Source: Octopus sinensis
Taxonomy: Eukaryota
Length of the DNA: 64,000 nucleotides
Direction: 5' to 3'
Assembly (NCBI RefSeq): GCF_006345805.1
Contig: NC_043014.1
Coordinates: forward strand, 5,580,001-5,644,000
The notes beneath the pieces are model-generated. The model did not search any database, was not told the DNA's origin, and was given only the letters and a program-made list of their open reading frames with translations. This document shows positions 199 to 58,276 of the stretch, one piece after another (the stretch's first letter is position 1; each line of letters starts with the position of its first letter). A program made the position numbers and the translations under genes.

Positions 199-250
199 AA
201 CCGTTTCCTTTTCAAGAAATCTCTGGATGACAAAGCTGTTCACACGCCAA
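199..250 (+). CDS. Paralog 1, exon 2 (stalk, NRFLFKKSLDDKAVHTP), short-chain collagen C4-like family; exon 1 lies upstream of the window
   Basis: ttttttcacag acceptor at 197-198 and gtaaga donor at 251; 52 nt, phase 0 to 1; same length and homologous to the exons at 20124-20175 and 46289-46340. Confidence 0.85.
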
Positions 251-827
251 GTAAGAACTAATTTTATAACGTGAAAGATAAAAACGTAAAAAACGTTGCT
301 CAGTAATTCTGCGAGTCTGGTGGTTCTAGAGAAATCATGCACCTGTCTTTGAGGGCCATTCCAGAGGGAAGCAATTGTTATTAAGATTTTCTAGCCTTTT
401 ATTTAACTTTTGATCTAGCCTTTTATTTGATGCTCCAACCTTGAATTAATTTATCTCAAAAAATTTAGCTCAAGACTCGATCATCATTGCTAAAAAACCG
501 CATTGAATTCGGCTGAGAAGTGAATTAGTGATGAATCATGCAAATCTTTACCAGTAACTAAAAGTATACATTCACCCCCAGGCGTGGGGGACTATTTCTC
601 GGAATCAGCTTTACGTTCATAGGAAAAAGAATTTTCAAACTCTTTGTTTGTTTGTTTGTTTGTTTCTTAATTTTTTTCTCTCATTCTTTCTTTCTTCCTT
701 TCTTTCTTTCATTCATTCTTTCTTTCTTTTTTCTTTCTTCCTTCTTTTCTTTCTTTTCTTCTTTCTTTCTTTCTTTCATTCTTTCTTTCTTAACTTTTTA
801 AATCCTCTATCAAGTTCCCATCTACTC

Positions 828-910
828 TTCCTTCCTTCCTTCCTTCCTTCCTTCCTTCCTTCCTTCCTTCCTTCCTTCCTTCCTTCCTTCCTTCCTTCCT
901 TCCTTCCTTC
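828..910. repeat. (CCTT)n
   Basis: Seen directly. Confidence 0.95.
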
Positions 911-1017
911 TAATCATTGTCTCCCCAATTCATTAATTCCCAGCCAAGATATTCTCTCCCACATGGTTCACCAATTATTTTCTTTTAAACTACATTGTTT
1001 CCTTCGCAATTTCGCAG

Positions 1018-1092
1018 GACCCGGTCCTGGATCCCTGTATACCCGGTGGGGTAGAACAAAATGTCCACGTATTTCAAGTCTGGTATACGATG
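1018..1092 (+). CDS. Paralog 1, exon 3 (R-PGPGSLYTRWGRTKCPRISSLVYDG)
   Basis: cgcag acceptor and gttagt donor; 75 nt, phase 1-1; YxRWGRxxCP...LVYxG motif opens the short-chain-collagen-C4-type C-terminal domain. Confidence 0.9.
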
Positions 1093-2403
1093 GTTAGTAT
1101 ATTTTGTTTCTAATCTCTCTCTCTATTTCTTTCTCTCTCTCTCTCTCTCACTTTCTCTTCCTCTCTCCTCCCTCCTTCTTTCTGATCTACACAAACGTTT
1201 TTCCTATTATGGTATATCACATTTTAAACGGCGATTATAGATTCTTTTGAGTTTACACAAAACTACTTTCTCCGTTGAATTTATTTGGTCATAGCCGAAG
1301 TATAAATGGCGTCAAGAATGATCACACCAACAGGATATCATCGAAAGTACCCCCATGAACCCAACCACAGAATATAGTTACCGAAGGACTGTATGCATTA
1401 ACTACGCACCATTCCACCACTTAATCACGCTAGTGCCTCATGGTAAGGCAATTCTGAGGTTTCCAGTCAGAAGACACTATTTTCCACCTCTTCCCCACCA
1501 ACTGTTCTTTCTTTAAACGAGATTTGTTTTTGCTTGAAATGCGATGGAACAGATTTTACCTGTCTATAACCGAACCATTAACGGTTTTATTAAAGGTTTC
1601 CCAATTCAGCTTAAACTGAACTTTACAATCCTTTCTCCTCTCACTTTCCTTAAGACGTAAAATAACCCCAATGATGCAGCAAATAAAACCAACGTGACCT
1701 GTTCACGACTAGCCGAGAGGTTTAGCTACGGTGTGCAGGATGTTCTGTTAAATAACTTTTAACTCCCTATCGACTGTCAATACTCTGCACCTCACCGTGT
1801 TCTTCTATTTTATATTGGTTAAAAATTCCTTGCATCGTTCTTCTATTTTATCTCCGTTAAAATTTGAACAAAATCGTCTTTTTCCATTTTAGAGGAAATG
1901 CCTTACGTAACGGCCTTCCCTTCACACTCTTTTGACATCTGCACACAACCATCTACAGCCATGTATCTAGACATATTCATAAATATTACCTACACAAACA
2001 CGTTGGCGTACACCTACAACATATATACATATAAATCATAGACACGTACAGTTCTTAACTCATACACAAACATTCATTCAGCAACACAGCTTACACTCGC
2101 ATCGATAGTAGTTTGTATACACAAACCTACACACGTAAACATAGTGAATGTTCAAACACATAGACACACGCACACGCGCACACACATAGACACAAAGACA
2201 CACACACACACACACACATACACACACATAAACTCAATCACATACACATATAGACACACACACACAAACTCGGATGTGTGTCTATTTATAATCGCAAATT
2301 TTAAAATTGAAAGTTCCTTTTCAAGGATTTCTTTTAATCCAAGTTTTTCTTATTTCACTTTACTTAATATTTTATTTATTTGATATTTTCTTACCAATTC
2401 TAG

Positions 2404-2902
2404 GTGTGGTTGGTGGAACAGCGCATAACGAAACAGGCGGCGGAAGTAATCTCTTATGTCTACCTAACGACCCCATTTGGGCAATTACACTGGAGAAGCT
2501 ACATACTGGAGTCACATGTATGGCAGTGAATATGAAACACGAAATTCCTATGCGAAAAAATACTTTTCTTTTGCTAACGCTGAATCACTTTTTGATCACA
2601 ATGTTCCGTGTGCTGTCTGTTTGACACGACAACCTGCTGTTGTTATGATGTTACCAGCCAGGACAAAGTGTTACGATGGTTGGACGATTGAGTATTCAGG
2701 ATATTTGATGACCGAGTATCATAATCATAAAGGCAGACATGAATATGTGTGTGTGGACTATGCACCAGAAGCTGATCCAGCGGGTTACAGAAACGAGAAT
2801 GGAGCTTTATTATATTTTGTGAAGGGAATTTGTGGTTCATTGCCATGTCCACCGTATGTCTATGGTCGCATATTAACCTGCGTTGTGTGCAGTAAATATT
2901 GA
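2404..2902 (+). CDS. Paralog 1, terminal exon 4 (Cys-rich NC1-related domain), with an apparent 1-nt deletion at about 2479-2482
   Basis: ctag acceptor at 2402-2403. GVVGG..GGGSNLLCLPNDPIW is in one frame (ORF 2307-2624) and GNYT..CAVC..CVVCSKY* in another (ORF 2477-2902). Restoring one base gives an intact exon homologous to 50176-50666. Confidence 0.8.
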
Positions 2903-3193
2903 ATGGAATATGGTTGAGTTTGCTTCTCTATGAAAACTTATGTTAACCAATTACAAGACATAATATAATATCATAAAAAATATAGACATTTTAAATTCTG
3001 TTTGCTAATATTTTATTGAAGTTATATAAATCGTTAAAATACTCTGCGCTACTAGTTAACAGAAAAATATTATAATGGAGAGAAAACCGGCGTCAGAGAA
3101 TGTGAGAATTATGCTTATAGAACAATGCAAAGCTGAGTGAATAATTCTAGATAAACATTGTATAAGGATCAGTTCATAAAACTAAAATGTGGA

Positions 3194-3199
3194 AATAAA
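3194..3199 (+). promoter_or_regulatory. Candidate polyadenylation signal of paralog 1
   Basis: AATAAA about 290 nt after the stop, a similar distance to the AATAAA of genes A and B. Confidence 0.4.
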
Positions 3200-56010: not shown

Positions 56011-56289
56011 TGGAGTGGGGTGTAATGAAGGGACAGTGGTCATTTCGAATGTCTATCAGCCACATACGTTTCAGTGAAACTCCACCTTGCTCCAGATTTT
56101 CCTTCGGGAAAAGTCTGTTTTTTCGCGAAGGAGCTTTTATGATATGTTTTACTTCTTCTTCTCTCGTGTCTCTCTACACTGCTGCCGGGTTGCGGTTAAA
56201 TGTTTTGTTTATTCTTTTTCTTTCGGTTATTCCCACTGACAGCATTTAGCTCCTGCTTGAGGGCGATCAGTTTGCGACTGAGTGATCTC

Positions 56290-57110
56290 TTCCTGCTATG
56301 CATGCATGTATGAATGTATGTATGTGTGTATGTATGTGTGTATGTATTATGTATGTATGTATGTTTGCATGTATGTATATATGTACGTATGTATGTATGT
56401 ATGTATGTATGTATGTGTGTATGTGTCATGTATGTACGTATGTATGTATGTACGGATGTATGTATGTGTGTATGTATGTATGTATGTATGTATGTATGTA
56501 TGTATGTATGTATGTGTATGTATTATGTATGTGTGTATGTATGCATGTACGTATGTATGTGTGTATGTATGTATGTTCGTATGTATGCATGCATGTATGT
56601 ATGTATTATGTATGTATGTGTGTTTGTATGTATGTATTTACCTACGTATGTATGTATGTATGTATGTATGTATGTATGTGTGTATGTATGTATGTACGTA
56701 TGTATGTATGTGTGTATGTATGGTTGTATGTATGTATGTATTATGTGTGTGTGTATGTATGTATGTATGTATGTGTGTATTTACGCACGTATGTATGTAT
56801 GTATGTATGTATGTATGTAATGTATGTATTATGTATGTTTGTATGTATGTATGTGTGTATGTATGTGTTTGTGTATGTATGTATGTATGTATGTATGTAT
56901 GTATGTATGTGTGTGTGTATGCATGTATGTGTATGTATGTATGGATTATGCTTATCTGTATGTACGTATGTATGTATGTTTGTATGTATTATGTATGTGC
57001 GTATGTATGTATGTACGTACGTATGTATGTATGTATGTATGTATGTATGTATGTATGTATGTATGTATGTGTGTATGTATGTATGTATGTATGTATGTAT
57101 GTATTCATGC
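56290..57110. repeat. (TATG)n degenerate array
   Basis: Seen directly; a longer version is at 62750-63970. Confidence 0.92.
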
Positions 57111-57130
57111 ATGCATATATGTGTATATAT

Positions 57131-57362
57131 ATTTCTTTACCACCCACAAGGGGCTTAACATAGAGGGGACAAACAAGGACAGACAAAAGGATTAAGTCGA
57201 TTACATCGACCCGAGTGCGAAACTGCTACTTTATTTATCGACGCGAAAGGATGAAAGGCAAAGTCGACCTCGGCGGAATTTGAACTCAGAAACGTAACGA
57301 CAGACGAAATACCGCTAAGCATTTCGCCTGGCGCGCTAACCACTCTGCCAGCTCGCCGCCTT
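57131..57362 (-). mobile_element. SINE type B
   Basis: Full type B consensus. Confidence 0.9.
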
Positions 57363-57719
57363 TATGTATATGTGTATATACTTATACGTATGTATCTGTT
57401 TATGTATATACGTATATCGCTTCCACAACGATATTCTCACAGTCGAATATTTTAATTAGATTAACAGAAGTAATTTAATTATCTGAAAATTTGTTTAATA
57501 AATTGTTATGAACAAACCAATATTAATAGGCGGTTGCAGAACGTTTGGTGTACAAAGAAAGTAGCTCTCTCAATGAGTATTAAATGTTTTCAAGAAATAA
57601 CAAATTAAATAAATACAAAATTAAGCAAGAAAATAAATCTTAATCCCCTAACAAACTGGGATATTTAATAATTTTACGGGTTTCTGCCTTTGTCATTAAA
57701 GTATTTCTGTAAATGTCTT

Positions 57720-57870
57720 TCAAACAACTTGCACATACAAGTGCTACCAGTTAAAAGCTCCGTATACCGGAAGCTAGCAAGTGTATGGGGTCATCAGGAG
57801 AGAATGCGCGCCGTGTCGGGGCCTACCTCTCGACGGCATCAATGCGCACCGGCCCCACTCACTGATATGT
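57720..57870 (-). mobile_element. 3' UTR fragment of the same REL-type LINE (approx.)
   Basis: Reverse complement of about 55850-56010. Confidence 0.65.
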
Positions 57871-58132
57871 AATTATTTTGTGTCTGCACCGAATCACAAC
57901 CACCTTTCATTCATAAATCTACACCCACACTTCTGATTATAGAAATATCATTGGTTTATGATTAAATTTTCGTCAAGGCTAGGTTATGGTGGGTTGAATA
58001 TAAATTGAATATATGAATATTGTAAATTGAATGTATACAGAAAGTCAGTAACAAACCTCCAGCTTAGATCTATCCTAAATTTATTGTTAAACCAACACAA
58101 ATATCGCATACAAGGAACGTCTATACATCCCA

Positions 58133-58276
58133 ATGGATTTCGCAAAACTGGCCAGGAATATTTCGCAACGTTTATCCATGTCTTCACTCATAGCTTTTGG
58201 AATACTGCTCATTCTGACCATAACGATTCTTAACCAAGATTTAAGAATGAGGAAAATGGAAGAGAAATCAGAACAA
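58133..58276 (+). CDS. Exon 1 of a further paralog, gene C (MDFAKLARNISQRLSMSSLIAFGILLILTITILNQDLRMRKMEEKSEQ); remaining exons not in the window
   Basis: Same 48-codon length, same gtgagt donor, mostly conservative substitutions relative to A/B, and a homologous 5' UTR (ctccagcttagatcta...). Confidence 0.82.

Follow-up and report, generated by a model that had tools for sequence, protein, structure and literature searches.

How does a gene come to be called a collagen gene when no collagen helix can be found in it? The question is raised by a gene cluster of Octopus sinensis, in an AT-rich stretch of 64,000 nucleotides (nt) of the assembly GCA_006345805.1 (CM016876.1:5,580,001-5,644,000; hereafter the window). 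Two intact four-exon genes, B on the minus strand and C on the plus strand, stand head-to-head in the window, together with two genes cut by its edges (A and D), one dead truncated exon 4 and one fragment of an exon 2, all placed by a six-frame motif scan and by tblastn with the joined model. RefSeq already lists both intact genes as 'short-chain collagen C4 [Octopus sinensis]', and the gain is one of interpretation, not of a new locus. Our reading, which we hold to be probable, is that the octopus genes belong, as collagen-less members, to the spongin short-chain collagen-related (SSCC) family, that they encode a type II membrane anchor, a stalk and an NC1-like head, and that they arose from membrane-anchored mini-collagens by loss of the helix exons. 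The name 'collagen' on such database entries is misleading.

An earlier note on this DNA, made from the sequence alone, had joined four exons with phases 0/1/1 in all copies, and in B and C these joins proved correct. Every junction is GT-AG, each joined frame is open over 253 residues, and the products equal RefSeq XP_029647388.1 (B) and XP_029647387.1 (C) letter for letter. The O. bimaculoides orthologue is also 253 residues long (94% identical, 100% coverage), and two O. vulgaris models are identical to the window genes over the parts that they include, with the junction of exons 1 and 2 covered. Since the joins match three annotations (O. sinensis RefSeq, O. bimaculoides and O. vulgaris), we take them to be right. 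The O. vulgaris models P0123 (CAI9737326.1, orthologue of C) and P0124 (CAI9737325.1, orthologue of B) begin at Met42 and thus have no anchor, and P0124 also omits exon 3; since what they do encode is identical to the window genes, annotation errors are the probable cause.

B and C differ at 15 nucleotides and six residues, with seven non-synonymous and eight synonymous differences and a ratio of non-synonymous to synonymous rates (dN/dS) of 0.25. Their fourth exons are 98.4% identical, against 78% in the adjoining intron. Collinear blocks around the exons are 82-99% identical (99.2% in the exon 2 region, 94.6% at exon 1, 89% at exon 4 and 82.5% at exon 3), and the rest of the introns has diverged. 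Conservation of exons over introns would indicate constraint, gene conversion, or both, and the uneven identity is suggestive of patchy conversion. One could suppose instead that the cluster consists mostly of decaying duplicates with no function of their own, as the frameshift in copy A, the broken exon 4 of an upstream copy, the dead exon 4 and the exon-2 fragment might lead one to think. However, B and C are undamaged: their splice sites are canonical, dN/dS is low and the exons are far more conserved than the introns; the O. bimaculoides orthologue has stayed close, O. vulgaris keeps both copies unchanged, and the frameshifts could be indel errors of long-read assembly. We consider such decay very improbable; B and C are intact and constrained. 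Mis-assembly as the source of the inverted duplication is ruled out by the 15 coding differences, by introns that are 78-89% identical and by the presence of both genes in O. vulgaris, and the two are a genuine head-to-head inverted pair.

The C-terminal 184 residues are the NC1-like domain of spongin short-chain collagens, as the earlier note had recognised. A homologue search returned 2091 matches, of which the best named are 'short-chain collagen C4(-like)' proteins of molluscs, cnidarians, echinoderms, amphioxus and a brachiopod, and the family also takes in the sponge Geodia barretti. Ten cysteines (C81, C109, C157, C160, C177, C204, C231, C236, C247 and C250) are invariant across 78 aligned family members, as are the RWG, CxxC, W and YxGY positions, and the HSQ motif is absent from the octopus protein. 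Ten cysteines and no HSQ fit the published pattern of spongins, which have seven cysteines shared with collagen IV, three of their own, and no HSQ (Fidler et al. 2017, PMC5395295).

The AlphaFold pLDDT (predicted local distance difference test) exceeds 90 over most of residues 70-253, and the predicted template modelling score (pTM) of a domain-only model is 0.84. When the domain model was compared with the PDB by Foldseek, the top 38 matches were all collagen IV NC1 (E = 2e-5, probability 1.0), at the remote level of template modelling (TM) scores of 0.42-0.50 and root-mean-square deviations of 8.5-10 Å. The full-length model met NC1 at a TM of only ∼0.2, because the anchor helix and stalk are included. 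A family profile hidden Markov model searched against the PDB reached the NC1 domain of Drosophila collagen IV (Viking) weakly (E = 0.05), aligning CAVC..CPxGW..YxGY with the start of the second NC1 subdomain. Searching PDB sequences with phmmer found nothing. With E allowed up to 10, Pfam C4 (PF01413) matched neither the octopus protein nor any of 35 family domains; nor did TNF or C1q structures figure in the 50 fold matches that each PDB search listed. On the modelled fold the head appears to be a diverged, remote collagen IV NC1 relative of spongin type, not a TNF-like domain. The type II architecture that the note had compared with TNF and ectodysplasin-A or transmembrane collagens fits the predicted layout of the protein.

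The missing helix and the exon plan of relatives

The absence of further Gly-X-Y exons, on which the earlier note's models depended, was borne out. No Gly-X-Y run of at least five triplets exists in the six frames of the window, the two runs of four triplets fall on the wrong strand or within a microsatellite, and the longest run in the octopus protein is 0. Pfam Collagen finds no match in the octopus protein or in the 35 family domains scanned, and does match amphioxus and crinoid relatives. Could the gene models be incomplete, with Gly-X-Y exons hidden in first introns of 7-11 kb or elsewhere, and the genes be ordinary short-chain collagens? The first introns are indeed long (7.2 and 11.1 kb) and repeat-rich. 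Against this, the frames of the window hold no such run, the annotations of three species agree, and the same four exons make up clam and starfish genes whose introns are short. Furthermore, a transcript-like sequence of a relative (P0032, 52% identical), on a Logan contig of 1.1 kb from another sample, has a contiguous open reading frame through anchor, stalk and domain with no Gly-X-Y. We give this explanation almost no credence.

Loss of the helix gains a footing in gene structure from relatives, whose exons were mapped exactly onto their genomic loci. Octopus gene C has exons of 144/52/75/491 nt, and the same four exons in phases 0/1/1 recur in anchored, helix-less genes of the clam Ruditapes (P0058; 186/67/75/488 nt) and the starfish Acanthaster (P0091; 189/175/87/491 nt). 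The amphioxus gene P0087, which is anchored and has 19 Gly-X-Y triplets, consists of an anchor exon of 231 nt (phase 0), a stalk exon of 79 nt with RVKR (phase 0 to 1), two Gly-X-Y exons (110 and 61 nt, jointly phase 1 to 1) and domain exons of 72 and 482 nt. The annelid Owenia gene P0132, also anchored and with a helix, is built of 276, 97, 131, 196 and 509 nt, beginning with the anchor exon (phase 0) and an RGKR stalk exon (phase 0 to 1) and continuing with Gly-X-Y exons and the domain. In both, the Gly-X-Y exons occupy exactly the phase-1 intron between octopus exons 2 and 3, so that their removal keeps the reading frame. The last exon is entered in phase 1 throughout and measures 491 nt in octopus and starfish, 488 nt in clam, crinoid and octocoral, 482 nt in amphioxus and 509 nt in the annelid; the phase-1 intron after VYxG and a last exon of ∼490 nt are kept from octocoral to octopus. 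The helix-less clam and starfish relatives with the same exons and phases, and the placing of the helix exons in the octopus phase-1 intron, are what is new here.

In a tree of the domain, cephalopod and bivalve proteins that are anchored and collagen-less fall together (24 rows; support by the Shimodaira-Hasegawa-like approximate likelihood ratio test, SH-aLRT, 82, and 95 for the cephalopods). Among the best 120 matches of each of two homologue searches, Pfam Collagen was absent from the named molluscan proteins and was seen in brachiopod, annelid, echinoderm, hemichordate, amphioxus and cnidarian proteins as well as in metagenome sequences. From these comparisons, loss of the Gly-X-Y helix through exon loss appears well supported, and a loss in the molluscan line would be the most economical reading. 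Under the history that we favour, the ancestors would have been old bilaterian mini-collagens with a type II anchor, encoded by an anchor exon, a furin-site stalk exon, Gly-X-Y exons and two NC1-like exons. The Gly-X-Y exons would have dropped out of the phase-1 intron with the frame intact, a loss common to cephalopods and bivalves, and the gene would have multiplied in tandem in octopus, its paralogues coming to differ mostly in two segments of the ectodomain. Such a history would be a clean case of domain loss by way of a frame-neutral exon cassette.

In the starfish Acanthaster planci, a tandem pair of genes (P0091 and P0103; locus L003, DF978824.1) shares a cytoplasmic tail, an anchor, a coiled-coil-like stalk and RKRR, and the two domains are 82% identical; a Gly-X-Y segment is present in only one of the pair, apparently through an independent and recent gain or loss of the helix.

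The earlier note had held that the helix was reduced to a PGPG remnant. The loss stands, on the exon structure of the relatives; the remnant cannot be shown. At position -3 relative to the Tyr of YxRWG, helix-bearing and helix-less members alike have a Gly, a conserved residue of the domain edge, and in a crinoid relative 40 non-collagen residues separate the helix from 'GGGSVY'. Octopus exon 3 has about three extra residues (PGP, PGL or SGP) compared with clam and amphioxus, and in an octocoral the helix passes directly into 'GKPPGGVVY' within one exon. PGPG as a trace of the helix is possible on these alignments and not demonstrable.

Predicted anchor, stalk and possible ectodomain release

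The earlier note had read the N-terminus as a type II anchor, which the features of the sequence, the modelled helix and the anchored relatives support well. Residues 14-33 are 20 uncharged residues with a mean Kyte-Doolittle hydropathy of 2.39, preceded by a 13-residue tail with two Arg. AlphaFold gives a single helix over residues 16-49 (pLDDT 90-95), followed by disorder over residues 50-69, and the hydrophobic core is not followed by a small-residue -3/-1 cleavage site (TVL|HQD). Across 14 Octopus sequences, conservation is 68% in the tail, 77% in the core, 67% in the juxtamembrane part and 77% in the domain; an anchor region about as conserved as the domain is unlike a disposable signal peptide. 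Flank charges of about +2 on the N side and 0 on the C side favour an N-terminus inside, and a cysteine-rich domain must sit outside the cytoplasm. The annelid, amphioxus and starfish relatives are clearly membrane-anchored. The octopus N-terminus looks like an uncleaved type II anchor with its N-terminus inside, and the NC1-like head would be displayed at the cell surface.

If the hydrophobic stretch were instead a cleaved signal peptide, the products would be secreted, soluble NC1-like proteins with no membrane stage. Short classical signal peptides do occur elsewhere in the family (P0090, P0094 and P0098 are examples), and the proteome of ink, a secreted fluid, includes a peptide from an O. 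vulgaris paralogue (PMC10142993). However, an n-region of 13 residues and an uncharged core of 20 are long for a signal peptide, the core is followed by no suitable cleavage site, and the segment and its flanks are conserved like the domain, with the modelled helix continuing to residue 49. Relatives with the same exon plan have cores of 25-28 residues, and a shed ectodomain explains the ink peptide equally. We therefore judge a signal peptide unlikely and retain the uncleaved anchor as the probable reading.

The predicted protein would thus comprise a 13-residue cytoplasmic tail, a 20-residue signal-anchor helix, a charged, disordered stalk of ∼35 residues and a disulphide-rich ectodomain of 184 residues, with possible release of the ectodomain at a conserved dibasic position of the stalk. 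Of the basic stalk described in the earlier note (RIRK/RMRK, KK), the KK column holds: one aligned column is dibasic in all cephalopods, as KK or KR in Octopus and Argonauta and as RR or KR in three cephalopod-like transcripts that are more distant. RIRK beside the membrane is an unlikely processing site, being non-conserved (RIGK and RITK in paralogues) and lying within the modelled helix. Outside the cephalopods, the stalks of seven of nine anchored relatives contain R-X-[KR]-R, against about 0.5 expected from shuffled stalks, with examples such as RTKR|AIDD, RKKR|EADE and RRRR|AVDD. For the family, ectodomain release is a well-founded reading; for the window genes, judged from their stalk sequences, it is no more than possible. 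The ink peptide fits secretion or shedding. Variability among Octopus paralogues peaks at residues 121-140 and 191-200, two segments that would fit, without proving, a diversified binding surface, and a role of the octopus head in binding or recognition is possible.

Several points weigh against the reading of these genes as anchored, helix-less descendants of mini-collagens. The membrane topology is a prediction, and the models of B and C themselves rest on annotation and sequence. The stalks of the window genes hold R-F-V-S-K-K only, with no canonical furin site, and a plain dibasic [KR]R is not above chance in basic stalks (0.5-0.8 per shuffled stalk), so that the case for a processing site rests on the aligned cephalopod column and on the enrichment of R-X-[KR]-R elsewhere. 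The relation to NC1 is remote, with modest TM scores and no Pfam C4 match, and trimerisation therefore cannot be assumed; spongins have no domain-swap region (Fidler et al. 2017, PMC5395295). Support for the molluscan anchored clade is moderate, and the mollusc-wide absence of helix-bearing members is judged from two lists of the best 120 matches. The direction, loss and not gain, would follow by parsimony from the presence of the helix in sponges, cnidarians, an annelid, a brachiopod, echinoderms and amphioxus.

A more far-reaching proposal is that these genes belong to an undescribed, ancient bilaterian class of type II, convertase-processed spongin-type proteins, of which the molluscan branch would be a helix-less, releasable ligand head and the octopus cluster a hypervariable recognition repertoire. 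We put this forward as speculation and think it rather doubtful. A literature search retrieved no description of helix-less or membrane-anchored spongin-type proteins, Aouacheria et al. 2006 lying outside its reach. An NC1-type head may act apart from the nucleation of a triple helix, displayed at the cell surface or set free as a ligand, and if the ligand reading is true a releasable NC1-like head would be comparable to the 'matrikines' of collagen IV NC1.

Further copies, damaged pieces and repeats

The octopus gene has multiplied in tandem. The earlier note had counted at least four paralogues and one dead exon; the count stands, with the qualification that only B and C are complete, A being frameshifted and D represented by exon 1 alone. 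Counting two more copies upstream of the window, there are at least seven within ∼97 kb, and 16 further O. sinensis 90% clusters, some of them isoforms, lie on the same chromosome record. Positions in the window are given in Table 1. An overlapping O. sinensis locus (L002) is, from its position 33,525, exactly the first 12,902 bases of the window.

Table 1. Features of the 64,000-nt window, in window positions
Feature	Position	Strand	Remarks
Copy A, exon 2	199-250	+	stalk: NRFLFKKSLDDKAVHTP; out-phase 1
Copy A, exon 3	1018-1092	+	75 nt, phase 1-1: (R)PGPGSLYTRWGRTKCPRISSLVYD(G)
Copy A, exon 4	2404-2902	+	frameshifted
Dead truncated exon-4 copy	7781-7920	+	VAGGHFSDQMGGGSNLLCLPNDPIWANYL...
Gene B, exon 4	11789-12279	-	491 nt including stop codon; most of the NC1-like domain
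Gene B, exon 3	17693-17767	-	75 nt, phase 1-1
Gene B, exon 2	20124-20175	-	52 nt, phase 0 to 1; stalk with KK
Gene B, exon 1	31326-31469	-	ATG, 13-residue tail, 20-residue hydrophobic anchor, juxtamembrane HQDSRIRKMEEKSEQ; out-phase 0
Gene C, exon 1	38915-39058	+	protein identical to that of B exon 1
Gene C, exon 2	46289-46340	+	
Exon-2 duplicate fragment	47499-47531	+	with acceptor; in intron 2 of gene C
Gene C, exon 3	48510-48584	+	
Gene C, exon 4	50176-50666	+	491 nt
Gene D, exon 1	58133-58276	+	MDFAKLARNISQRLSMSSLIAFGILLILTITILNQDLRMRKMEEKSEQ; GT donor
Matched blocks, B vs C	11445-12531 vs 49946-51017; 19217-20647 vs 45817-47249		
(TATG)n/(ATAC)n microsatellite arrays	35271-35771, 36464-38612, 42729-44593, 56297-57122, 62750-63983		
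Non-LTR (long terminal repeat) retrotransposon open reading frame fragment	27295-28551	-	intron 1 of gene B; Pfam RVT_1, E = 3e-17
Copies of ∼410-bp repeat	8335-8747, 12768-13195, 13316-13721, 15688-16104, 16165-16580, 18091-18508, 41557-41982, 53434-53880	both	
Direct duplication, ∼3.4 kb	53694-57122 and 60164-63607		94% identical; brackets gene D exon 1

Copy A has exons 2-4 in the window and its exon 1 at 4.2 kb upstream of it (L002 29305-29448). Compared with the O. vulgaris orthologue P0011, exon 4 of copy A lacks one nucleotide after 2482 (TGGGC|AATTAC), and the frame is shifted, so that A is either a young pseudogene or the victim of an assembly indel. The 134 residues behind the frameshift are identical to the C-terminus of RefSeq XP_036366826.1. 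This model (LOC115221573, 310 residues) is a chimera spanning window positions 199-2902 and L002 10001-36426, put together from exons 1-4a of the upstream paralogue, exon 2 of copy A and the part of A exon 4 behind the frameshift. The next paralogue upstream, ∼11 kb off the window (L002 22380-22857), has a broken exon 4 that appears as two high-scoring segment pairs in different frames, with no CAVC segment, and is either another pseudogene or another assembly indel.

The dead exon 4 named in the earlier note was confirmed as such: its AG acceptor is replaced by TC and the CAVC half is absent downstream. The note had not listed as dead the exon-2 fragment in intron 2 of gene C, which encodes QNRFVSKKSLD and then runs into a stop in AT-rich repeat. 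Gene D has only exon 1 in the window, with its later exons beyond; the corresponding exon of O. bimaculoides P0002 is 96% identical.

The (TATG)n/(ATAC)n arrays, one of which has a higher-order period of 92 bp, reach 2.1 kb and border the first exons of B, C and D; strong local GC/AT skews are due to them. The ∼410-bp interspersed repeat has at least eight copies, 81-92% identical and mostly in the introns of B and C. It matches no tRNA or Rfam entry, and neither scan returned anything for the window as a whole.

Comparison with known systems

In predicted layout, the octopus proteins resemble collagens XIII, XXIII, XXV and XVII, ectodysplasin-A, MSR1 and collectin-12, which share a short tail, a signal anchor, a stalk with a basic site and a globular or oligomerising part at the C-terminus; in the relatives from amphioxus, annelid and starfish, the likeness extends to a helix and R-X-K/R-R sites. 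The octopus proteins differ in having no helix, a stalk with KK only, and an NC1-like head in place of a TNF, C-type lectin or SRCR domain, and no sequence homology to the type II collagen, EDA or scavenger receptor families was detected. NCBI gives two Lingula anatina relatives, P0127 and P0129, the names 'macrophage scavenger receptor types I and II' and 'collectin-12', which probably derive from an N-terminal anchor or coiled coil together with a collagen helix.

Collagen IV NC1 is the sole PDB fold among the top 38 matches, and the halves of both domains open with C-P...(W/V)Y.G, the second containing C.VC...CP.GW...GY. The octopus domain is shorter (∼184 against ∼229 residues), with ten cysteines instead of 12 and no HSQ, and its protein has neither the long triple helix nor the 7S region of collagen IV. 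Spongins have been defined as a short helix plus NC1, with a stand-alone NC1 gene only in ctenophores (PMC5395295). That ctenophore gene (Fidler et al. 2017) is like the octopus genes in having an NC1-type domain with no collagenous part, but it is of collagen IV type with HSQ, whereas the octopus proteins are of spongin type and, on our reading, membrane-anchored and secondarily helix-less.

The closest system is the SSCC family itself. The octopus domain matches cnidarian, amphioxus and echinoderm members at E down to 1e-50, with the ten cysteines, the lack of HSQ, the phase-1 intron after 'VYxG' and the last exon of ∼490 nt in common. Aouacheria et al. 2006 is said to be the founding paper of this family, and the Ephydatia short-chain collagen C4 is reportedly a member. 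The octopus genes depart from it by lacking Gly-X-Y, the defining collagenous part, by a predicted signal anchor in place of the signal peptide, and by their tandem expansion. Where the literature knows spongins as helix plus NC1 (PMC5395295), a whole molluscan branch of the SSCC family would thus have a membrane anchor and no helix, and the octopus exon plan ties this branch to the anchored, furin-site mini-collagens of annelid, amphioxus and starfish.

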